DNA from: Lepidodermella squamata
Lineage: Eukaryota > Animalia > Gastrotricha
Direction: 5' to 3'
NCBI GenBank assembly: GCA_047495785.1
Contig: JBLDXI010000013.1
Span: 1,550,001-1,614,000, forward strand
Length of the DNA stretch: 64,000 nt
Positions 4,862 to 55,036 of the stretch are shown piece after piece. Positions within the stretch are counted from its first letter, which is position 1. Each line of letters opens with the position of its first letter. The notes under the pieces are model-generated. The model had not been told where the DNA came from. It searched no databases and saw only the letters and a list, made by a program, of their open reading frames with translations. Both the position numbers and the translations under genes were made by a program.

Positions 4862-5356
4862 CTAATACCCAGTCGCTTTTTTATTAACAAGTAGTGATTT
4901 ATAAAGCGCACTCTTTCTTCGTTCGTGATGAACATCATCGCGGAGTTTTCGAATTTGTTCTCTCATTCTTGCAAATGTATCCATACTGTTGGCATCGCTA
5001 GCTTGATCGGTTTGAGTGGCCGCACTTTTGCAGGCTGGTTTGCATAAGATCGCTACGGACCTAGTCCGGTCCGAAAATGCGTCCTTTTTCATTTCGTTTG
5101 AAGTCTTGGGGATGGAAGACAGATCTTTCGCATCTTTCGATTCGAACAGTAAGAAACGATTTTCGAATGGCGGCTTGTTTTCAGGTAGCTGCTGGAGAAG
5201 CCGGGGCACTTTCCGTTTCCGGGCCAAAAGTTCTTTCACAGTCGGCGTTCTTCTGCGTTTTTCTGTTTTTGGCCATTCGACTTTCTCATCATTTCGTACG
5301 ATAATCACGTTGAGAGTCGTCGAAGTTGGGGCTGGAAAACTATCTTCAGAGAACAT
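4862..5356 (-). CDS. hypothetical 164-aa protein with a basic NLS-like patch and a C-terminal coiled coil
   Basis: ATG-initiated ORF preceded by an acceptor-like TTTAG. Contains KRRR/RKRK and a heptad-like C-terminus (MREQIRKLRDDVHHERRK). No family recognised. Confidence 0.5.
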   Translation of the reverse strand: MFSEDSFPAPTSTTLNVIIVRNDEKVEWPKTEKRRRTPTVKELLARKRKVPRLLQQLPENKPPFENRFLLFESKDAKDLSSIPKTSNEMKKDAFSDRTRSVAILCKPACKSAATQTDQASDANSMDTFARMREQIRKLRDDVHHERRKSALYKSLLVNKKATGY

Positions 5357-5989
5357 GTTTATGACTAAAGCGTTGTATACGAGTTAAAATTAAAAGAAAA
5401 AAGCCAAGGTTAAATGCTCAAAAAGTACGTAGATTGAGTGCCATCCAACGTTGGGTTTCTCTTCCAATGATGCAGGACCATGTGTTGCGTAATAATGAAA
5501 CGGATTTACGGGAGCTTATTAGTCCGAAGTCACAACTCATCGCAAAAAAATTGGGAAAATTAATCTGTGAGTGCTGTCGCTTGAGTCATTGCATGACGTT
5601 ACCTTGGAAGATAACTTTGATTAAGATGAAAAAATAGAGGTATTCTAGACTTCCCTTATAGAATTGTCTAACTTCGTCGACTTTTGGCTAGATAGAGCAT
5701 CTCTAGCATCAGTATAGTTGCTTGTGAACAGCAAATTTTCTGTTGCATTTTCGGCGAAATTCTCAATACCTGATCGAAATACGTTCCGCAAGAAGGAATT
5801 TGCTAGCTATTGGGAGGATTTTTCTAGCATAACTGCTCGTCAAATCAGCGTTGTGTTGGGACATGCTACCTCCATGTTAGACAAGTATAAGTATAAAATA
5901 ACATCAAGAGCATCATCATGGAGTCTGGAAGATTTTTACTTCAAAAAAACGCAAAACGGATTCATATATGATTTAATTCCCTTCGATGT

Positions 5990-7726
5990 TTAGCTACAGC
6001 AGCCATGAAGCACAGAGATTCCTAACAAATTGATTTGGTAAAGAGGCGAAAGTTTCTCAAGTCTCACTTCAACCTTGGTTAAATGCGATTTCGGCAGCAC
6101 ACAAAGCAGGCTATCCATCATAATCCCGCGGCGATTAACCAACGTCGGAAACGGCAGTTGAATCGCGATGTTTTGCTGAAACATCTCTGGTCGGAAATCT
6201 AGATTAATACGCGGCCATCGAACAGAGAACATTTCATTCGATGGCTTGATATAGGCCATTTTAATGTCAACAGCCAACCGGCCAACCTCTGATGAATTTT
6301 CACTCGGCGAGATACAGCCTTGTTTACACACCGAAAACAGCAAGGCTAATCGTGAAACAACCGGTTTAGACCCACACAAGCGCGTAGAATCAACCCGGCT
6401 AATCGGCAGTTGAACCTTGAAAACAGCTGGCAGTAATTCGCGGAAAGAAAATGCAATCAACGCGTCGTTTGCCACGTTAATGCCGTCGTAGGTTAAAATA
6501 TTCAAACTACGCCTGATATTATTCAACGTAGATTCTTCGCTGACAATATTTGACGCCAGTCGATCGCGAGACCGAAATCGTCTGTTGAAGGTCATGAAAC
6601 ACTCAGCGTCTTGCCACCGATTTGTATCGTTGAATAAAAAGGTATTCGGAACGTTGTAGCCAGCTAATTTCGGCGGTTCTTCGTAAAATCGATCGTCCAG
6701 ATCGACGCTATTCGTCTTCATTCGATCAATCAGCCGGTTAACGGCAATTCTGAAGTAATAAATCAAAAATTCAGCCGTCATTAGATGAGCAAGCGCCGAT
6801 GGGTGGTAATTATCGTTGCCGGCAAATAGGTCAAGCAAAAATTTTCCATTTATCGGGCCATCGCTGCTTGGGTCACAGAAAAACTGTTTCCATCCAATGG
6901 CTGGCAGTTGGTAATATTTAGCAACTCGAAGGTAGATGTCATCGGCCAAGTCGCATCGTTTCTCAGGTAAATACGCTGGGTTTGCTGTGAACATTTTCGC
7001 AACGTAAGGACTGTTCAATAGCACAATATGAATAGCTGGGTTACGGCGCCAAATAGTTCGAATGAGGTCTTCGAGATGGCGGCCAGGGCTGTCAGGCTGC
7101 TGGAAGCCTGGCAGCTTTTTATCCGTTGCCGCTCCGTCATTTACGGCGAATTCGATCATTAAAACATCTGTCTCATTCAGGTCGATGAATTCGGGCAGGC
7201 ATAAGGCGAAGAGCTCACTTCCCGTGCCACCCATAGCGCCGTTTTTGAACGACACCTCGACGCCTATAGGCTTGAAAATCGCCTCTAGCCAGTCCCAGAA
7301 TAGCGATGTATAGGACAGGGCGCTTTTCTAAAAAAAAGCGATTTTATATTCACAGTTTTTTTTAGTATTTTTTGTCACCGATAAACCGCCGCCTGTTGTA
7401 ATTGAACCTCCAACAGCAGCGACCCTGAGCGTCGGTTGTTTCGTTTCATTAGACCCATCACTTCTCTCTATAGTAGACAGAACTAATGTTTCTAGCAACT
7501 GGTCGAGTCGGGACGAGTCGCCAATCGTTTGCAGCGAACGGTTTACGAATTTCACCGTGTAATCGATCTGGGGAGCTGTTCGAAGAGCAGCTCTTAGCGT
7601 AGTAGCTAATGCTAATTGCTGCCTATTAACGGTGGCTGATTCTGCTGTTAAAAATTGATTTGTTACGGAGGCAACGAAGAGTAATAAAACTGGAAGATAA
7701 CTAATACTACGCCAATAATTAGACAT
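5990..7726 (-). CDS. secreted SGNH/GDSL-type hydrolase (paralog 1), 2 exons
   Basis: Signal peptide (MSNYWRSISYLPVLLLFVAS). SGNH blocks: VGGSIT, NGAMGGTGS, IEFAVND, DNYHPSALAH. 51-nt intron at 7328-7378. Clear similarity to 18927-20609. Confidence 0.85.
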
Positions 7727-44552: not shown

Positions 44553-47099
44553 ATGCCAGCGATCTTATGGACGATTCTTTGGAGTTTGATCTCACTATCA
44601 CACCAGCAATCCATGTCACCTAGGACTATAGCCTATAAGCTAGACCCTCCTATTTTGACTTACAACAAAACCGCAACCTTAACATTTTTACTGGGACCAT
44701 CATGCGGGGCGGATAAGGTGAAATTCGATCAAATCAACGACATAACAGACAGTTTGATCGAATGGACGTCACGCAGTGAAAATGTCATAGCTAGTGAGTC
44801 ATCCTTTACCATTCAGAAGGCGGCCTTTCCTCAATGGGGCAATTACTCGGCGAGGTGTTTGGATTTGAAAAACTTCTTCACGTACCAGCCGAGCCCGTTA
44901 GCGGTTCCGATCCCGGTAAATCCGCGGATTTTTCACGTTAATTTCAGCCGGTTGGTTGACGAGATAGTCACTACTACAACTACGACGCCGATTCCGGATG
45001 AAAACACAACAACCCCGCCGTTTATATGGCCAGACCCGGTCGATGAGGTGAATGACCCGACGATTTTCGAATTTGCAGTACCATTAGGTCAAAACGTTGA
45101 AACCTGGCTGTTGAAATTTGACGTTGGCGATGGCTATTACCCATATAGTGAAACTGCGAGGTTTAACCTGACTGGGTTGGAAAATTTGACCCTTAGCCAG
45201 CAACCGGTAGCCCCGGTTTGGCACCCCTATACTGTGCCTTATTTCGGTTTCCCGAACGGAACTACCTATCGCTACACCTTCGACTTATCGCAAGATCAAG
45301 CTGCGTCTAAACTACCGTCAATTTGCGATTTTCCTATTCACGCATTCGCCTCGATGAAGTCGAACCTGGCCGCGTCCTACCATGGTTTCAATCTAACGCT
45401 GAAGCTAAAATACCCAGCTCAACAACCGAGTCTATCAGCCCGGCTTGATGGTTCGACATGCGTGCTACGATGCGCCATCCGTTCTGCCTGTCCGTTGGTT
45501 GACAGTTTGCAGTTGAAAATTGACGAAGCCGGTATTTACCAGTTCCCATCGGTCAGCACGGAAAAAAGTACTGTTGTCGAGATCAGGATCACGCCGCAGG
45601 ATTGCGAGACTATCGTTGGGCTTTACAATAACAACACCGGCGTAGTCAAATGCATCGCGAAAAATGAAGCTGGAACTGTGACCTATGTCCTTCCTATTAG
45701 GGAGGTACCGGGAATTCGTGAGTCCTTTCAAGCATTTTTCGCTTAATTTTTATTTGAGGTTTTTTCAGAAAATCTGCAGCGAAATATTAACAAGATAGTA
45801 AAAAGTGGCGGCCTTCCGACTTGGGCGATAATTGTGATAGTTGTCGCTGCAATTCTTGTTCTGATCCTCCTCATCTCCATCATCGTCCTATGCTGTCAAA
45901 AAAGTCGAATAGCTAAACAGAAAAAGCGCCATTCCCAGGCATTGGCAGCTGCTGCGACCCAGAACGAAACTCTGAAAAATGAAAATCAGTCACTGGCGAT
46001 GATGTCGATGCCGCCGAGGGCCAATATGCTGCCGGCAACTCAACCCCAACCGCAGCCTATCTCAGCCCCGATTCACAGCACTCCGCCACGAACTGCAACT
46101 GGCTATCGCGGGCCGATCGCGACTCATGGTCAGACATATCGCCTGCCGGCTGAGGAAAGGTATCATCAATATTGGCGTCGGTAAAAGTCGCCGTAATTCT
46201 CTATAAATTAACTGAATTTCTATTTCCAGCATTTCTGATGACGAGGAGCCGTACAGCCCGATGCCGGAACCGGTCGTCCTACCTCCAGCGCCTGTTCGCG
46301 GATTCGAGAGTTCGTTTTCCTACACAGCCCCGCCGCCTCGCCAGCCTGTCTCGGTCGCCCCTGCTCCTGTGCCTATTACGGTGGTGAAGACCGGGTCTCG
46401 CGAAAATTTAAATCCGCAGCCTAGGCAACCGGCGCCTATCGTTCCTATAACGATATCCTACACAAACCGTTCCGCTGAATCCGATGAAAGCCTAGTCGCA
46501 CCCCCGAAGCAACCAGCTGTTACCAAAGCACCGGCAACTGCTGCCCGTCCTAGGGCGGGTTCGCAGGACAATCTGGCTTCGAAACCTGTTGGCAACTCTC
46601 GAGAAAATTTGGCCGCTAAACCGCCTACAGGTTCGAAAGAGAATCTGAATGCTAGAGGCTCACGCGAGAATCTTTCGGTGCTGACTGGTCCGAATCGCCT
46701 CGCCGGTTCGCGTGATAATTTGTCGGGCCGGCCGAGTGGGTCACGTGACAATTTGAATGTTCGCTTCGTTGAACCAGAACCTAGCGCCGCATCTCGCCCG
46801 CCTCCTCCGGCTTACACTGCCCCTCCTGATATCGGAGCAATTCCACCGGCTTCTGCAAATCAGCCCGCACCTGCTTCTAATCTTAATCGAGAAGACAGGT
46901 ATAGTTTTATTTTCCGAGTGATTTTTTCATTGTTATTTTTTTCAATTTCAGTTACGTCCAAGCTAATCGACGAGCAGCGGCGCGCTATCTGCCGCAACCT
47001 AGTGTATCCCCGTCAAACTCGCCGAACCTTAATCGAAGGAATCCGCCTGCAGCAGCCAAGCCGGTCTACAACCCTAATAGCTTTGGTTCGGATGTTTAG
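44553..47099 (+). CDS. type I membrane protein: signal peptide, Ig-like domain(s), TM, Pro-rich tail with GSRENL repeats, PPxY and C-terminal SDV
   Basis: Signal MPAILWTILWSLISLS; Ig-like CVLRC...GVVKCIAKNEAG; TM WAIIVIVVAAILVLILLISIIVLCC. Last exon, read manually after intron ~46899-46950, ends NPNSFGSDV* (47097-47099). Confidence 0.78.
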
Positions 47100-47301
47100 A
47101 GATTCGCTTTGAAATTATTAGCCTCGTATTTTATCGATTATTTTTGTACCAGACAATCGTTGTGGGCTTGTTAGAACGTCAATAAAAAAAGCGTGACAAA
47201 ATACGTTTTTATTTTTCTGAAAAAAACATAGTCCGCCAGGCAATAATGGGTCGCGAAAGAACAACAGGGCGTTTGATTGACAAATAATTTCTAGCCGGGA
47301 A

Positions 47302-49200
47302 TTAATTATCGCTGCGTTGTAAATTCGGTGTGCCGGGCTTTGACTGGTTGACGTTTTGCGGCGTCAGAATAATGAAAGGTTGCACATCTCGATACATTTC
47401 ACCAATAGCGACCTTAAAATCAAAAATTTACTAAATATTCCGAGATTCGAAGGCTGGGTGACAAACCTGTCGCTTCAGCATGGCCAAATTCGATTTCCCT
47501 TCGGCTATCAGTTTCGAAATGTCAGCAGCATTTTCCAATTTTTGATTTTCGCGAAAGCCAGCCTTCACGCGACGCAGGCCGTACTCCCTTATAATAACAT
47601 TCAAAACAATAATAATACTCGAAATAACAATAAGCACATTAAATTTCAAGTCCTAAGCTGTTATTATTATTTTTTAAGGAAGATTCATTTTTGCGACGCA
47701 AACTGATCAGCTTTTGTACCAACAGCGGCGGTGACGTTCGAAAATCCGTTCTTCTCCAACTCAGCCTCAAGTTCCCGCTTGATTTTATTGACAACCGGTG
47801 GGCCTTGGTACATCAAGGCCGTGTAAAGCTCGACTAGCGAGGCACCGGCCGTGATTTTTTCATAAGCGTCCTGGCCGCTGGAGACACCGCCAACTCCGAT
47901 TATCGGCATTTTACCACCGGTTAACTTGTAAAGCCGAGCAACCTGAGTTGTGCTCATTTTGCTCAGCGGCTTTCCGCTCAAACCTCCCGTTTGCTTGACT
48001 AGATCTTCGGGGGATTTCAACGTATCAGGCCGGCCTGTTGAGGTATTTCCCATTATTAAACCGGAAACCACACGATTTTGCCATTTCAAGGCAACTTTGG
48101 CGATAGCGGCCAGTTCTTGCTCGGTAAGATCTGGCGCGATTTTTACCAAAATTTTAGGTCTGGCACTGAGAGATGACGTTGTTTTCGACAAATGAGCATC
48201 GATTCCTTTCAGCAACTTCTCGAAATGTTCCTCGCTTTGCAGCGACCTTAAACCAGGTGTATTAGGGCTTGACAGATTGACAACGATGAAATCAGATTTA
48301 TCGCTGAAATTATCGAGACCAGACGCGTAATCGGCAACAGCGTCTTCAGATGTTTTATTTTTGCCCAAATTAACTGCCAAGACACATCGATCGTGAGGCG
48401 GTCCGGTCAGAAAATCGAATAGTCCACCGCTTGCCATGTTGGGCGATGGGAAGTTGATATTCAAAGAGTTTCTCGTATCGTTACCCACAATTTTCATATC
48501 ATGGCCTTTTGTTAGGTTTTTAAGCCGAAGTGAGACGAGAGCCACGCGAAAAGCTTGAACTCGTTTCACGACCTCATCAGCACCCTCGCTGTTGAATCCG
48601 TAGCGATTAATCACAGCTTCATCCTCGACTAGGCGGAAAACGCGTGGTTTTTCGTTACCAGGTTGCGGTAGTGGGGTAACAGATCCGACTTCGACGAACC
48701 CGAAACCCATTCGAAACATCGCACCCATCGCCTTGGCGTCCTTGTCGAAACCAGCGGCTAGCCCAATCGGGTTTTCGAAGTCAATGCCGAAAACTCGGGT
48801 TGACAGTCGCTTCAGCGGTTTATCATCTCGCCCAGCGAACCGCGGGCCGATGCCCCAACTCGCGAGGCAAATCGCAACTTGATGCGCAGTTTCAGGGTCC
48901 AATTTACGCATAAATGGCATCACGATGTTGGCGTAGAATTTCTCCTCATTTATCAGCGCCATATAAGCGAATGAAGTCAATGTGCCGCCCGTAATCATGA
49001 TGAGCGAGCCCCCGTATTTACGCGCTTGACTCAAAGGCATTGTCAAGCTTCAACTCTTCGACGTTGATATTTCGTTATTACATAAATCCTAATTAATTAT
49101 TACAAAGTGTTAAATCGGCTCACCTGAAATTATAATGCGGAAACTTGGCGGCCTCTCGCAGTAGGGCGCGGTAGAGTTTCAAAACTTCCACTTTCGACAT
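47302..49200 (-). CDS. LYRM4: LYR motif protein 4 (ISD11), 102 aa; exons 49124-49200, 47467-47587, 47302-47412
   Basis: Spliced product MSKVEVLKLYRALLREAAKFPHYNF-R-EYGLRRVKAGFRENQKLENAADISKLIAEGKSNLAMLKRQ-VAIGEMY... matches ISD11 ([33 protein letters not shown]...IRRQVHIGQLY). GT-AG junctions are phase-compatible. Confidence 0.92.
47685..49040 (-). CDS. DHODH: dihydroorotate dehydrogenase (quinone), class 2, mitochondrial; intronless
   Basis: Motifs DPETAH, NPIGLAAGFDK, GSVTPLPQPGNEKPRVFRL, INRYGFNS, NLGKNKTS, VNLSSPNTPGLR, KIAPDL, GGLSG, IIGVGGV. N-terminal TM. ATG at 49040. Confidence 0.97.
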   Translation of the reverse strand: MPLSQARKYGGSLIMITGGTLTSFAYMALINEEKFYANIVMPFMRKLDPETAHQVAICLASWGIGPRFAGRDDKPLKRLSTRVFGIDFENPIGLAAGFDKDAKAMGAMFRMGFGFVEVGSVTPLPQPGNEKPRVFRLVEDEAVINRYGFNSEGADEVVKRVQAFRVALVSLRLKNLTKGHDMKIVGNDTRNSLNINFPSPNMASGGLFDFLTGPPHDRCVLAVNLGKNKTSEDAVADYASGLDNFSDKSDFIVVNLSSPNTPGLRSLQSEEHFEKLLKGIDAHLSKTTSSLSARPKILVKIAPDLTEQELAAIAKVALKWQNRVVSGLIMGNTSTGRPDTLKSPEDLVKQTGGLSGKPLSKMSTTQVARLYKLTGGKMPIIGVGGVSSGQDAYEKITAGASLVELYTALMYQGPPVVNKIKRELEAELEKNGFSNVTAAVGTKADQFASQK

Positions 49201-49235
49201 TAAAAATTACTAGAAATGTAAAGGAATGTTTTATT
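49201..49235 (-). promoter_or_regulatory. AMDHD1 poly(A) signal followed by an unpaired 3' splice acceptor 9 nt before the LYRM4 ATG
   Basis: On the minus strand: AATAAA at 49235-49230, then TTTACATTTCTAG with the AG at 49211-49210, then TAATTTTTA ATG. Confidence 0.55.
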
Positions 49236-49365
49236 TCAAGGTTTTTGAGCTAGAGGTAGTTAAAATATCACTGGAAGATAGTATTGCTACAAAAATAATG
49301 AAAGGCATAGAAGGTTTGAAAGGATTTATAATCGTAAAAATCAATGAGTTAACTTTCTAGTTTAG

Positions 49366-50978
49366 TTAGTCCTGCTTGTTGTAGACAACTTTTCCAGCTT
49401 TAACAACGTTGCGAATAAGTTCGTTAGAGCAACCGACTTTGTATATCAGGTTTTCCCATTGGGGTGTATCAAGTATGATCAAGTCAGCCAGTCTTCCGCA
49501 CTGAACAGCGCCAACTTTATCGGAAACACCAAGGGCAGCAGCCGAGTTCAAAGTTGCGGCGCAAAGGGCTTCAGCTGGCGTCATTCGTAACAGAACACAA
49601 GCCATATTCATTACTAAGGGCTAATAAACAAAATATGTAAAAATGATTTGTTTGAATTTGAAAGAAATGCATACCATATTGTAACAATATGCATTAGGGT
49701 TGAAATCGCTTCCGAGTGCAACGCAAGCACCAGCATCAATCATTTGACGAGCAGGAGGCATTTTCAGACGTAAAAGATAAGCTGTAGTTGGCAGCAGTAC
49801 ACCTACAGTAGGCTGACCAGTCTCTGCGGCTTTAGCTAAGGCTTCTATACCGGCCTCAGATATCTCCTCCAGATGCGAAACCGCTCGACAGTTGGTTTCG
49901 GCAGCAAGCTAAATCCCATCAAGCCAAATGAATGTGTACAAGACGCTGTTTCATAAAATTACCTCAGCAGAATTGGTATTTGAGAGCTCATCGCCGTGAA
50001 AATTTCCTCTCAACCCAGCTCTACTCGCCGCTTCAAGAATTCGGCGCGTGTGACCATTCTCAAATATTCCTTTCTCGCAAAAAACGTCCACTCCGCCGTC
50101 TACCTTGACCTCTCCATTTTTCACAGCGTCCAACACAGCAGGTAACATTTCGGTAACAACTCGATCAGTTGCACTCACAACATTATCATCTCTGTTAGCG
50201 GTATCAGTAGAATAAAATAGAGCATTTGATCAGAATTATTACTGAGGGACTGCGTGAGCACCACAAAACGTTGCGACGATTGACATTTTACCTGCGAATT
50301 CTTGGCTCGCACGGTGTATTACTCGCAGCATTTTTAATTCAGTAGCTGTGTCCAAACCGTAGCCAGATTTGACTTCAACTGTTGTCGTGCCACAAGATAA
50401 CATTGATTTCAATCGGCTCTTCAGATCACTTAATAACTGATCTTCCGATGCCGCCCTTGTGCACCGAACGGTGTAGTGAATACCGCCACCAGCTTTGTGT
50501 ACCTCCAAATAAGTCGCACCTTGCAGTTTCATTACAAATTCTTTCAGACGGTCCCCAGCATTACACGCATGTGTATGGCAATCGACAAAGCCTGACAGTA
50601 AATCAAATTAAAAAATAAGCCCAATAATAACGGCGCAATTTACCAGGAATTACACTACAACCCCGCGCGTCAATGACGGCGTCAAACACTTCCTGAAATG
50701 GCAATCCCCGACTGTACTTCTTCTCAACGAGTGATTCAGGACCTATCTCAATTATCGTGCCATGCCTTAGAAGAATGGATGTGAATCGAATACAAAACAC
50801 AAAAAATGACGCTCACGAACTTATCAACAACAACGTCAACTCCATCATCTTCATCTTGGATGACTGCAACATCATTCATTTCTTCTTTTCCATGTTTGAA
50901 AAGCTTTGATGATTCATGTCTACCCAGTATACACACAACTTGCCGAGCATGCCGAATAAGCAATGAATAGTTGGTCAT
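49366..50978 (-). CDS. AMDHD1: imidazolonepropionase (HutI), multi-exon
   Basis: Motifs GFVDCHTH, GATYLEVHKAGGGI, EVKSGYGL, TFCGAH, DVFCEKG, FHGDEL, SHLEE, ALGSDFNPN, ATLNSAAALG. Confidence 0.95.
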
Positions 50979-51826
50979 TTTTCTAGAAAACAAACAAAAC
51001 ATGAACAAACGGAATTAGAAGCGCGATCAACTTCGAGAACATTTTCAAGGTATCAAGAATATTGCAACGGTCTTGAAAACTGTTTGGGTGCAAGCTTCTA
51101 AAGCCAGCGACCCAAAAAACCCGCCAGAAAGCAGCAGTTTGACTGGAGACCTGGTCAAAGATACCGCGGGTCGCCTCTGGAAGATCGCCGAGATTTGAAA
51201 AAGCATGTGCCAAGTTTAGCGCGTAAAACTTTGACATATATATTTTACAAAAATACACTTGATTTTATAATTTATTTTAAAAGGCATTTAACTGTTTCTA
51301 TGTAACCTTGGATACTTAATCCAGGCCATGCCTTTTCTGGCCGAGGAAGGATGCGACGTGGAACATCCGCAGCCAAAATCATGAAAACTCCAATGCTCTT
51401 AACTTTCAGAGGGCAATGAACTTAAAGAAACAACATCAGCTTGTTCTCCGCTTTTGTTGTTATCGATCAGAGCTAGTTATTAGCGTTCACAATGTAAACA
51501 ACTGTGTTATCGGGACAGTACATCAAGACGGAGACTTATTATGTTCGGGCGTATTTCCTAGAGCGTAAGCTCGCGATTTTCTCACAAGTCCAGTCAGGGC
51601 GAGGAGAAATCGTCACTTCGTGATCGTGATCATGAAGACAAAATGACGATTTTCTGGCTCGTGAATTTACTTTCGCTCACAAACCATTTGCCAGAATGAA
51701 ATTACCCCTACACCACTCCATCCGTGGCGTCCATCGTCCATGTGCGACTCAAAATGTGTTCTAATATTTGAGTATTGTGATTTTGTTAGCTGTTATCATG
51801 TATATGCATCTCTGATACTCGGAATA

Positions 51827-54800
51827 ATGGCTCAGAGAAAGTCAAATGACGCCAGTGGTAATGAATACGTTTCTCATGGTGAGTCGGATTTCTCACTTAT
51901 AATTGTAAATTTAACAACTGTTTTTGTGATCAATCAGCTCTAAAGTATGAGTCGGATTTGTTGGATTTGATAAAAAATCGCAGTGGACTTGAAAATGCCG
52001 AACTGATCGTTCAACATGCTTTCAACGTACTCGATCGATGGTAAATATTTTCACATTTGAACCATCCAGGAAATTAACGTTATTCTTATTAGTATTCCAG
52101 AGTTGGGCCAATTTGTTAGAGTTATTCAGCTTATTCGAGATCAATTATTCGGTTAACAATTTTATTGCGTTGCCTTCAGCTGAGCTAATGTTGTCGCATT
52201 TCTAGATGCGGTATATAGCGAAAAATTCACAGAATGTGGCGGGAAGGTCGCTCGCCTGCCATATTTCAAGATAATTGAATCTACGGAGGTCAATGCAGAA
52301 AAGAGACTTGATCTGAAATCTAAAGATGTCGATACAATCACTAGAAGGTAAAATCATTGACTATTGCACAGTTACGTGATATTTTATTATCTTCGGATTT
52401 GCAGACTGTTTGAAAAGCAATTGGAGTATGAAAGCCTAGAGGCCGAATTCGCCTCAGCAGGCAGTCAAATTCGCTCGCTGCAAAACTCGCTATCCGTCCA
52501 AATTGATCGCAACGATGATCTGTTGAAGAAAATTCAGGAATTAGAGGACAAATTGATAGCACAGGAGGATCGTTCGGATGAAATAATTCGGGAGCTGCGT
52601 TTGAAAATTGCTGAAATGAAACATGAGCTTGAAGAAAAGCAAACTTTGATTAATGACCTCGACAAATACAAGAAGGGTTACATGGCCTTGGATTCAAGTA
52701 TGTAAATAATTACGGCATAGATATAGCTTTCATGCAGTTGAAACTTTTAGCTTTCTTTAAATGGCCAATGAATATTACTACGCGAGTGATGAAAGAGACT
52801 GATGCAAAATCGATCATCTATGGCCAACCAAAGCCGTTTAGAACGTCGACTCAAGCTGGTCGGCATGAGGCAGCTCTCACAATCAGCTCAGCCTTAACAA
52901 AGCAAATAGAAGAGCTAGAAAAGCAGTTAATAGACGGTTCGTTTCCCAATTCTGCTGAAGTGTAGAAAAATTGAATAAACGAAATTACAGCTTTCGAGAA
53001 TGAATCTTCATCAGTAAAATCAGCCCTTGTCAATCGCCGTCTGATTACGGACAATCTGGATCCTGGCATTGAAGCTGAGGAAGAAGAAATGGTCATACAA
53101 GCCAAAAAGGTTGTTCTATTTTCTCATCTTATTTTTTATTTCACCGAATAATGCTATTTCAGGCAATCAAAGCTGAACGTAGTTTCACTGGTTTCATGAC
53201 GATCGCCTCACGTGAACTCGACTTGCTGAAAGAGCATGAAAATAACATGAATTCTTTGATATCGTCGCGAATTCTCAAAGAAAAGCAAGAAAAAATCGAG
53301 AAGCAAATCGACCCAGATGACCGTTCGCAAGATATTGTCCCTTCTGAGCCAGTAACTGAAGCTGCAGAAAACCCATTCATCCCAAATGAAGTTGTGCTGT
53401 CTAAATACTCGATAATAGTCCAAGTTTCTCAAGATGGTCTGCATTTCTATGACTTACCTGTCAATGAGCCTTGTGGCATGTGTGGGGTAAGGAATCGTGA
53501 TTAGCTCGAGCGATTATCTTAATTTTGATTGTTTTTTATTCAGCTGACTGCTGTGCTCGTCTGTCCCCATCGAATTCTGTCGCGGCAAATCACTATTCCC
53601 TTGACCCCTAATACGTTGTATATGAGGATTCTTCGGCCTACTTTGAAGAGCTCAACATCCGAAATAGTCGCACCTCCCACTTCGGCTGATAATGTTCGTC
53701 CTCCAACTCCTCAACTGAACAAACTTGGCAAATTTTCGAGCTCTAGCGATATCAGAGACAATACCAGCACATCTGGGGTTCAAATGGCGTTCGGACGGCC
53801 AAAACCCAAAGATCTTGCCGAAGATAAGTCTCTGGAACGCTTCACTGCAGCTGTCGAGCAGCGAATTGAAGCAAAACTTCGCGAAACCAAGCCTCGCCTT
53901 CTCACCGAGGAGCAGATGTACGCAGTCTGCGAAGAAATTATCGGACACCTACTGGCGATCGAATACGCCACTCCTCATAAACTAGCGTCTTTGGTCGACA
54001 ACTTTTTCGGCCAAGTTGAACTTTCTTACCGGTCAAAAACAGCGGCTCATTTAGTGGCTGGTGACGTTTTACACAACCTGCCAATGGGTGTCGATAAAGG
54101 CGATCGTTACCTTCAACTGTTTTGCCTAATGCTAAATGGTACCATTGACTCTTCGCTAATTAAATACGCAAGTTTACTAGCCGATGCTACGCTAACGATC
54201 GATTGGCGACATCAAAGTGATTATTGGGCTTTCGCGCTGGTGGTCTATCCGTTTTTGGATGAAGAAGACGCGGATATCGTTCAGATGAATTTCACATCAT
54301 TCTCTGAGGGCCGAATCAGCACTGCCATTGTGCTTGAATACCAGTTATTTTGCCTACTCCGCGGAACTGAACAGCGCTATCAGCAGATGTTTGAGCAGCT
54401 GCATGAAATGGCATCGGGCCAGCCGAGTTTTACTGAAGATGAATTTATCAGGGCTGTGAGAGATATCCTGCCGAAAAGTTCGTTCGATTTCAACAAAGCC
54501 AAGGCTTTGTATCAGGAGGCATATCAGTCTACGCTATTTTGGGCTGATTTTCAACCGACCGAACAACCCCCTAGTGGTTCAGTTCGAGCTCAGGCTGCCA
54601 AATCTACAAAAAATAATGATCCGTTATATGCGAAAGCTGTTAATTATTACAAGGATGCGATCTCAACGGAAAGAGCTGCCCGTAATTACTTTTCAACTGA
54701 TCGAAAATTTATCTTATTTGATTTTTTTTAGAAATTTTGTGCTATTTGGACCTTCTCGGAATTATCGATAGCATCAAAGAAAATCTATGGACGCGAGTAC

Positions 54801-55036
54801 TAGAAATGCGGACTTCATCTTCAATGCTTGCTCATGAGAAATTGGGTGTTCCAGAGACGACAGAAGGCGAACCAAGGCATCGCACGATTGTTCGCTACGC
54901 GGATGTCCACAAATTGGCTATTCAGAACTCGAAGTTCAAGCGCTTCAAATTACGTGAAAATTTGGAATACGACGAAGAACAGTTGAATCGCGGCAGCAAA
55001 GGAAAACAATCTCTTAAGGCGAATGCCAAAAAATAA
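51827..55036 (+). CDS. uncharacterised coiled-coil protein, multi-exon
   Basis: Consecutive + strand exons with short GT-AG introns; long heptad segment at 52406-52700; ORFs 53151, 53529 and 54737. No family recognised with confidence. Confidence 0.65.

Follow-up and report, generated by a model that had tools for sequence, protein, structure and literature searches.

We analysed a 64,000-nucleotide (nt) stretch of the genome of the gastrotrich Lepidodermella squamata (assembly GCA_047495785.1, contig JBLDXI010000013.1, positions 1,550,001–1,614,000; hereafter the window) and found a complete gene for dihydroorotate dehydrogenase (DHODH) within the first intron of LYRM4 (ISD11), on the same strand. 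DHODH messages appear to use LYRM4 exons 2 and 3 as their 3′ untranslated region (UTR) and to end at the LYRM4 poly(A) site at 47194. The same nesting is present in a deeply diverged relative known from metagenome assemblies. We assign a probability of roughly 65% to the reading that LYRM4 and DHODH are an old, conserved same-strand pair of host and nested gene that forms a single, overlapping transcription unit sharing one 3′ end. Coordinates are those of the window, and features are on its minus strand unless marked otherwise.

A DHODH gene within the first intron of LYRM4

The coding part of LYRM4 exon 1 (49200–49124, 77 nt) starts with an ATG at 49200, comprises 25 codons plus 2 nt and holds the L-Y-R motif. 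This piece of open reading frame (ORF) reads MSKVEVLKLYRALLREAAKFPHYNF and ends at a strong donor, CAG/GTGAGC. Intron 1 (49123–47588, 1,536 nt, GT..AG, phase 2), which we placed from sequence and phase, ends at the acceptor ...TTATAAG/G. Exon 2 (47587–47467), which is also part of the DHODH 3′ UTR, is separated by intron 2 (47466–47413, 54 nt) from the coding part of exon 3 (47412–47302), which ends with the stop codon TAA (47304–47302) and is matched by exon 3 of the relative in tblastn. The joined coding sequence (CDS) of 309 nt encodes 102 amino acids plus the stop in an unbroken frame. An earlier note, made from the sequence alone, had proposed the positions of LYRM4 exon 1, of the start of exon 2 and of the DHODH ORF, the in-phase splice and the intron of 1,536 nt, and all of them hold on the minus strand.

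The Complex1_LYR profile (PF05347) is split exactly at the junction, with positions 2–22 in exon 1 (E 3.7e-8) and positions 24–59 in exon 2 (E 9.6e-7). Residues 5–69 of human LYRM4 align without a gap to exons 1 and 2 (E 5e-14), and the LYR tripeptide forms residues 9–11 of the joined product. The best solved-structure matches for the two exons are all human LYRM4 (E 5e-14 to 1.6e-13), and the next LYR protein is the product of the MIEF1 upstream ORF (uORF; E 2e-5). From these matches we identify the joined product as LYRM4 rather than another LYR protein. There is no in-frame ATG between the DHODH stop and exon 2, and exon 1 is therefore required for the LYRM4 protein. Searching a large protein collection with the joined exons 1 and 2 yielded no candidate. 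Five RNA-supported introns nearby measure 51–54 nt, and intron 1 is about 28 times that norm.

The intact DHODH ORF (49040–47685, 451 amino acids plus the stop, intronless) occupies 88% of intron 1. Its product matches the DHO_dh family (PF01180) at E 4.5e-83 over positions 2–291 of 291, and the human and rat mitochondrial enzymes at E values of about 1e-103 to 7e-106 (human 7e-106). The catalytic loop NLSSPNTPGLR corresponds to human NVSSPNTAGLR with SSPNT aligned, and residues 11–60, which include a hydrophobic stretch at residues 11–30, align to the human N-terminal segment. By these sequence criteria the nested ORF encodes a class 2 (quinone, mitochondrial) dihydroorotate dehydrogenase. 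It groups with animal DHODHs, and its nearest named relatives are animal enzymes at 44–50% identity. Apart from the metagenomic relative, we found no DHODH closer than 54% identity in large collections (1.8 billion representatives). Among DHODHs with an N-terminal extension we found no LYR domain.

Compared with the human enzyme, the DHODH of the window carries an additional stretch of about 50 residues, at residues about 165–216 (48390–48545). In the relative the insert here is shorter, and a 56-nt intron interrupts the gene at this spot (positions 5909–5964 of its contig L003), where the window has none. RNA contigs over the DHODH ORF of the window contain no splice joints inside it.

The flanks of the nested gene are tight, as the earlier note had described. 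The leader between the LYRM4 donor and the DHODH ATG (49041–49123) measures 83 nt and holds the AG at 49090–49089 and the ATG-TAA uORF at 49083–49078 that had been pointed out there, as well as AGs at 49056, 49054 and 49048. The spacer between the DHODH stop and the exon 2 acceptor (47588–47684) measures 97 nt. It lacks AATAAA, again as noted before, but carries AATAAT twice at 47671–47663 and an (ATT)n microsatellite at 47617–47608.

Several further observations concern these flanks. A stretch of the spacer at 47604–47617 can pair with 47662–47675 using A and U only (14 nt, 93% complementary). Such a hairpin could possibly bring the stretch rich in AATAAT against the T-rich tract that precedes the acceptor, or it may simply reflect low-complexity complementarity. 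Pairing between the ends of intron 1 (11 nt at 91% in the window, 9 nt at 100% in the relative) was rejected as a feature; it did not exceed the 20–31 similar pairs that arose by chance in each region. Comparison with the relative found no non-coding conservation in the leader or the spacer, an Rfam scan of the whole window returned nothing, and a scan for bacterial promoters and terminators was discarded as irrelevant in a eukaryote. The spacer is polymorphic a short way upstream of the exon 2 acceptor: length variation of (ATT)n at 47607–47617 and a 2-nt deletion at 47667 occur as two alleles in all three sequencing runs that we used. Both variants of 47910–48120 occur in runs labelled organisms A and B. 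The shared variants suggest one clonal, highly heterozygous line.

DHODH RNA runs through the LYRM4 exons to a shared 3′ end

We examined RNA-derived contigs from two different studies (X1 and X3) and genomic DNA contigs (X2). X1 and X3 are complementary DNA (cDNA): they contain SMART adaptor letters, and all five short introns of the 4-kilobase (kb) stretch are removed. The X2 contigs independently confirm the layout, in two alleles about 5% apart. The shared 3′ UTR extends over 47301–47194, with AATAAA at 47213–47208 (the poly(A) signal that the earlier note had placed near 47210) and the poly(A) addition site at 47194. Loose ends of poly(T) stand directly before 47194 on the plus strand, 14 nt past the AATAAA (T20 in X1, T21 in X3). 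LYRM4 intron 2 is spliced out in the contigs of both X1 (depth 130.5) and X3 (depth 29.8).

A single X3 contig links this 3′ end to intron 1. It consists of T21, 47194–47410, a spliced joint and 47465–47617, and so covers the 3′ UTR, exon 3, exon 2 and 30 nt of intron 1. Polyadenylated RNA that has lost intron 2 passes the exon 2 acceptor unspliced in this contig. The contig breaks at 47617 because of the (ATT)n length polymorphism and not at a splice site, and it overlaps contigs covering 47588–47762 that reach the DHODH CDS. The RNA contigs show no poly(A) loose end in the 97-nt spacer.

Read depth agrees with this picture. The spacer is covered in X1 and X3 at a depth near that of the DHODH CDS. 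In X1 the exon 2/3 contig has a depth of 130.5, the spacer-crossing piece about 81 (163 minus 82.1 at 47607), the two spacer alleles together 82.1 and the DHODH CDS 75–80; there is no fall across the spacer. The step of about 40% falls at the exon 2 acceptor, and X3 behaves alike (about 31 versus 17). This fits two RNAs that end at the same 3′ position, and from it we infer, indirectly and roughly, that the spliced LYRM4 form makes up 40% and the unspliced DHODH form 60% of RNA that contains exon 2. The X1 depth bins 47170–47303 and 47304–47437 are reproduced exactly (171.7 and 131) by three contigs without any coverage of intron 2. Because intron 2 has no depth, the RNA that contains the spacer is mature, and is not nascent RNA or DNA.

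The earlier note had asked whether DHODH has its own poly(A) site or reads through to that of LYRM4, and these contigs favour read-through to 47194. As DHODH RNA runs through the LYRM4 exons, the two messages overlap and one primary transcript cannot give both.

The nesting is conserved in a distant relative

Our search with the C-terminal third of DHODH identified the relative (P0121, E 5e-53; next match 1e-43). Its contigs, L003 to L008, belong to one species at an identity of at least 99.5%. In L003 an amidohydrolase-family gene is followed by LYRM4 exon 1 (5231–5307, 77 nt), the donor, 46 nt and the DHODH ATG at 5354. After the DHODH stop at 6684 come 92 nt and the acceptor, then LYRM4 exon 2 (121 nt), which an intron separates from exon 3. 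A synteny comparison had been proposed in the earlier note, and here it bears the nesting out: the LYRM4 exons measure 77 and 121 nt as in the window, and the phases and the upstream neighbour are unchanged, around an intron 1 of 1,469 nt. Collinearity extends over about 10 kb and at least five genes, in order and orientation (44600–54970 in the window, 167–9344 in L003).

The two species are far apart. Identity is 58% for DHODH and 55% over the first 84 residues of LYRM4, and synonymous sites are saturated. In exon 1, 20 of the 26 residues are identical (77%; pN 0.15). In the DHODH tree the two sequences form a clade with 100/100 support on a long stem and lie 1.09 substitutions per site apart, a distance about equal to that between different animal phyla in the same tree. 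The same nesting in so deeply diverged a relative means that the arrangement is old and not a recent retrogene. We therefore rejected a recent retrogene origin: the ortholog of the relative, in the same place, has the 56-nt intron described above, and the nesting predates the split. Judged by sequence, both genes are intact and under purifying selection.

The relative also differs in its flanks. Its 46-nt DHODH leader has no AG and no ATG, and hence no uORF, and its LYRM4 and DHODH ATGs are only 123 nt apart. A canonical AATAAA lies in its spacer, about 50 nt ahead of the acceptor. Beyond this relative the arrangement did not turn up: none of 39 other metagenome DHODH loci has a LYRM4 exon nearby, nor do Lingula, Lineus or six other Logan contigs. 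In the literature we found no paper that links the two genes at a single locus.

The 5′ end of the DHODH message

Removal of intron 1 would yield the LYRM4 message. Its retention would yield a DHODH message whose 3′ UTR contains LYRM4 coding exons; this UTR of 437 nt would consist of the spacer, LYRM4 exons 2 and 3 and the LYRM4 3′ UTR, with a spliced intron 220 nt past the stop. Each primary transcript would then give only one of the two products. The oversized intron 1 would likely be spliced slowly in a genome tuned to tiny introns, leaving a large unspliced fraction.

For the start of the DHODH message we rank three candidates. The first, which we hold at somewhat under even odds, is a start shared with LYRM4, on RNA that retains the intron. 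DHODH would then be translated by ribosomes that scan past the exon 1 ORF of 26–33 codons or reinitiate after it. In intron-retaining RNA this ORF stops 78 nt before the DHODH ATG in the window and 24 nt before it in the relative. A start site of its own, within exon 1 or shortly downstream of it, is another serious candidate, at perhaps one chance in three, and addition of a spliced leader inside the 83-nt leader (at 49089 or 49048) is improbable. In our ranking the shared start stands slightly ahead of the internal start, and leader addition comes last. The 46-nt leader of the relative, with neither AG nor ATG, and its two ATGs 123 nt apart speak against trans-splicing within the intron and make a private promoter hard to accommodate. 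A poly(A) signal followed by an unpaired TAG precedes LYRM4 in both species, and this disfavours the same two possibilities for DHODH.

One version of the shared start is a 'splice it or keep it' bicistronic locus, in which a single transcript begins at the LYRM4 5′ end, intron removal gives LYRM4 and retention gives DHODH. We put this forward tentatively and regard it as rather doubtful in this full form. Leaky scanning, or reinitiation once the exon 1 ORF has been read, would bring ribosomes to the DHODH AUG. LYRM4 would possibly sit downstream of the amidohydrolase gene within an operon, and the splicing efficiency of the 1.5-kb intron would set the ratio of an iron–sulfur (Fe-S) assembly factor to a pyrimidine enzyme linked to the respiratory chain. 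The earlier note had likewise proposed that one pre-mRNA yields either LYRM4 or DHODH. The mutual exclusivity is supported, and we found no read evidence for a common pre-mRNA or a shared 5′ end. The functional link between Fe-S assembly and pyrimidine synthesis that it drew is speculation.

The RNA contigs leave a coverage gap from 49081 to about 49405, which spans exon 1 and also takes in the upstream gene's 3′ UTR and its final 40 coding bases. The gap swallows the conserved end of that gene, which must be expressed, and it is therefore technical, likely caused by tip clipping, allelic bubbles or filters. We rejected the gap as an argument against retention of the intron, and it is equally uninformative about exon 1. 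The DHODH-side RNA contig ends at 49080, followed by 25 adaptor letters. We rejected 49080 as a cap site: the adaptor is in the wrong orientation and lacks the GGG of a template switch, and a like adaptor junction occurs at 47169, where there is no real RNA end. Priming within the transcript was seen in X1. LYRM4 exon 3 holds CAACGCAG (47312–47319), an 8-nt match to the SMART cDNA primer, and X1 contains an abundant mis-primed product with a loose end at 47319, a trap for reading 5′ ends.

Alternative splices from exon 1 were considered and set aside. A splice to the AG at 49089 would remove a 35-nt intron and give an ORF that ends 2 nt before the DHODH ATG. Since this AG is missing from the relative, and since confirmed introns measure 51–54 nt, we rejected it as a conserved mechanism; the earlier note had already remarked that 35 nt is shorter than the introns seen elsewhere. 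The donor of exon 1 could also join in frame to an AG in DHODH codons 3–4 (Leu-Ser, ..TGAG/T) in both species. This hypothetical fusion of LYRM4 residues 1–25 to DHODH would use sites at 49030–49031 in the window and 5363–5364 in L003, with introns of 94 and 57 nt. It was set aside, as GAG is a poor acceptor and the RNA contigs contain no such joint. Nor did the RNA contigs show exon 1 spliced to any acceptor upstream of the DHODH ORF.

Alternatives and points against

Several observations weigh against one overlapping transcription unit. The joint 49124/47587 was not found in the RNA contigs, in which exon 1 and 49081–49123 are uncovered. The X3 contig that crosses the acceptor has 30 intron-side letters, and our bridging rule asks for 31. 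Each contig contributes a single mean depth, and near the acceptor two bins show an excess that we could not explain. Contigs cannot prove a single molecule from the DHODH ATG to 47194. Given the AATAAA in its spacer, DHODH of the relative may end within the intron. Collinearity over about 10 kb means that the conserved order is not specific to the LYRM4/DHODH pair. Finally, LYRM4 has a T and DHODH an A at position −3 of the start codon, alike in both species, and this contrast of a weak and a strong start context could be taken to support leaky scanning. We downgraded this argument, since pyrimidines at −3 are common here: four of the eight other putative starts in the window have one.

The alternative that survives best, though we consider it unlikely, is an ordinary nested gene. 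A private promoter, located within exon 1 or shortly after it, would drive DHODH, and AATAAT (47671–47663) would direct polyadenylation within the spacer. The RNA crossing the acceptor would then amount to minor read-through, or to LYRM4 precursor not yet spliced, with no coupling between the processing of the two genes. The hexamers of the window spacer, which resemble polyadenylation signals, and the canonical AATAAA of the relative fit this explanation, and same-strand nested genes in Drosophila are mostly single-exon and treated as separate units (PMC3814207). Minor read-through is at odds with the steady depth across the spacer (about 82, then 81, then exon 2) and with the lack of a poly(A) loose end there in the RNA contigs. 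An unspliced precursor does not account for the complete loss of intron 2 from the same RNA population, which marks the crossing RNA as mature. The halt of DHODH-side coverage at 49080 beside adaptor letters would suit an own promoter, but with the adaptor wrongly oriented, and a similar junction at 47169 off any RNA end, a cap site there is unproven.

It is less probable still that a spliced leader added in the intron, at 49089 or at 49048 just before the ATG, frees the DHODH message from the LYRM4 or operon precursor and destroys that precursor for LYRM4. AGs are present at both positions, and several putative gene starts in the window have a TAG 6–14 nt before the ATG. The relative has no AG in its 46-nt leader, however, so that trans-splicing at 49089, which the earlier note had put forward, cannot be a conserved mechanism. 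The RNA contig runs past 49048, 49054 and 49056 to 49080 without a leader and then continues into adaptor. No spliced leader was seen at 49088 in the RNA contigs, which stop at 49080. Ahead of 49089 the sequence is rich in A and does not resemble the five acceptors of confirmed introns. The uORF that had been noted ahead of DHODH is present in the window, but the relative has none, and it would lie outside the RNA if transcription started near 49080.

It is very improbable that the nesting is illusory, with the 77-nt LYR-like ORF a relic or chance match and the true first exon of LYRM4 elsewhere: 49124–49200 is uncovered by RNA contigs and no joint was found, but the Pfam profile splits exactly at the junction, the alignment to human LYRM4 is gapless across it, the spacer ahead of exon 2 offers no in-frame ATG, and the exon keeps 77% amino acid identity in the relative, at an unchanged length, phase and position, with synonymous sites saturated.

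Genomic neighbourhood

The last exon of the upstream amidohydrolase-family gene (49366–49620; PF01979, E 5e-11) precedes LYRM4 in the window, and the same neighbour is found in the relative. The gap between its stop and the LYRM4 ATG (49201–49365) measures 165 nt, compared with 175 nt in the relative (L003 5056–5230). In the window this gap contains AATAAA at 49235–49230 and an unpaired acceptor, TTTCTAG, that ends at 49210, 9 nt before the LYRM4 ATG. In the relative it contains ATTAAA at about 5190 and ATATAG, followed by 13 nt to the LYRM4 ATG. The signal lies about 20 nt before the TAG in both species. The gap looks like an operon junction at which 3′ end formation and leader addition would nearly coincide.

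We made three further observations around the locus. Downstream, a convergent gene on the plus strand has an RNA contig that ends at 47169, and AATAAAAAAA (plus strand, 47181–47190) lies between this end and the LYRM4 poly(A) site at 47194; the two positions are so near that the two 3′ ends abut or overlap. Upstream, an X2 DNA contig leaves the window after 49313 and continues with 255 unlike letters, which suggests a structural haplotype difference just upstream of LYRM4. Elsewhere in the window, several long ORFs (21852, 29954 and 34923) start 6–14 nt past a TAG preceded by T-rich sequence. As a sequence pattern this fits widespread leader trans-splicing with very short 5′ UTRs.

Discussion

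Switches based on intronic polyadenylation or intron retention are known, and in these a retained or terminated intron alters the C-terminus or the abundance of one protein. The LYRM4/DHODH locus is alike in that the outcome would hinge on whether an intron is kept or removed, and the AATAAA of the relative would pit cleavage against splicing. It differs in that the intron carries a complete, unrelated and conserved enzyme gene.

The closest parallel is the cholinergic locus of C. elegans and other animals, where cha-1/ChAT carries unc-17/VAChT in its first intron, in the same orientation, and the two genes share a 5′ exon (PMC3875643). Both loci place a same-strand gene within the host's first intron, are conserved between distant species, join genes of related cell biology and allow one message per precursor. 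In the cholinergic locus, however, it is a non-coding 5′ exon that is shared and joined by splicing to the exons of the nested gene, which has its own 3′ end. Here exon 1 is coding, a conserved acceptor toward DHODH is absent, and the 3′ end is shared. Pairs of the CPNE1/RBM12 type share 5′ non-coding exons and a promoter through splicing (PMC2568002). They too produce two unrelated proteins from one locus by alternative processing and are conserved among species, but the sharing occurs at the 5′ end, whereas here we show it at the 3′ end.

Of the nested genes of Drosophila, 71% are antisense to their host, and 72.5% of the same-strand ones have a single exon (PMC3814207). DHODH resembles same-strand nested genes of Drosophila and mammals in that it lies wholly within one host intron and is intronless. 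Typical nested genes are young and narrowly expressed, with their own promoter and terminator in a roomy intron. LYRM4 and DHODH, in contrast, are two housekeeping mitochondrial genes with flanks of 83 and 97 nt, an ancient association and no separate 3′ end seen. Four features thus set the pair apart, namely two housekeeping genes, an extremely tight fit, coding exons of the host that serve as UTR of the nested gene, and an old arrangement.

Same-strand nested genes are usually regarded as young, independent passengers, whereas here two essential mitochondrial genes have been interlocked since before a very deep split. A consequence for annotation is that gene finders are prone, in this lineage, to overlook a LYRM4 exon 1 of 77 nt or to report the gene as missing. 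If the 5′ end is also shared, a single splicing decision would divide the output of the locus between two unrelated proteins, and the locus would be a compact natural case in which intron retention expresses a whole second gene.

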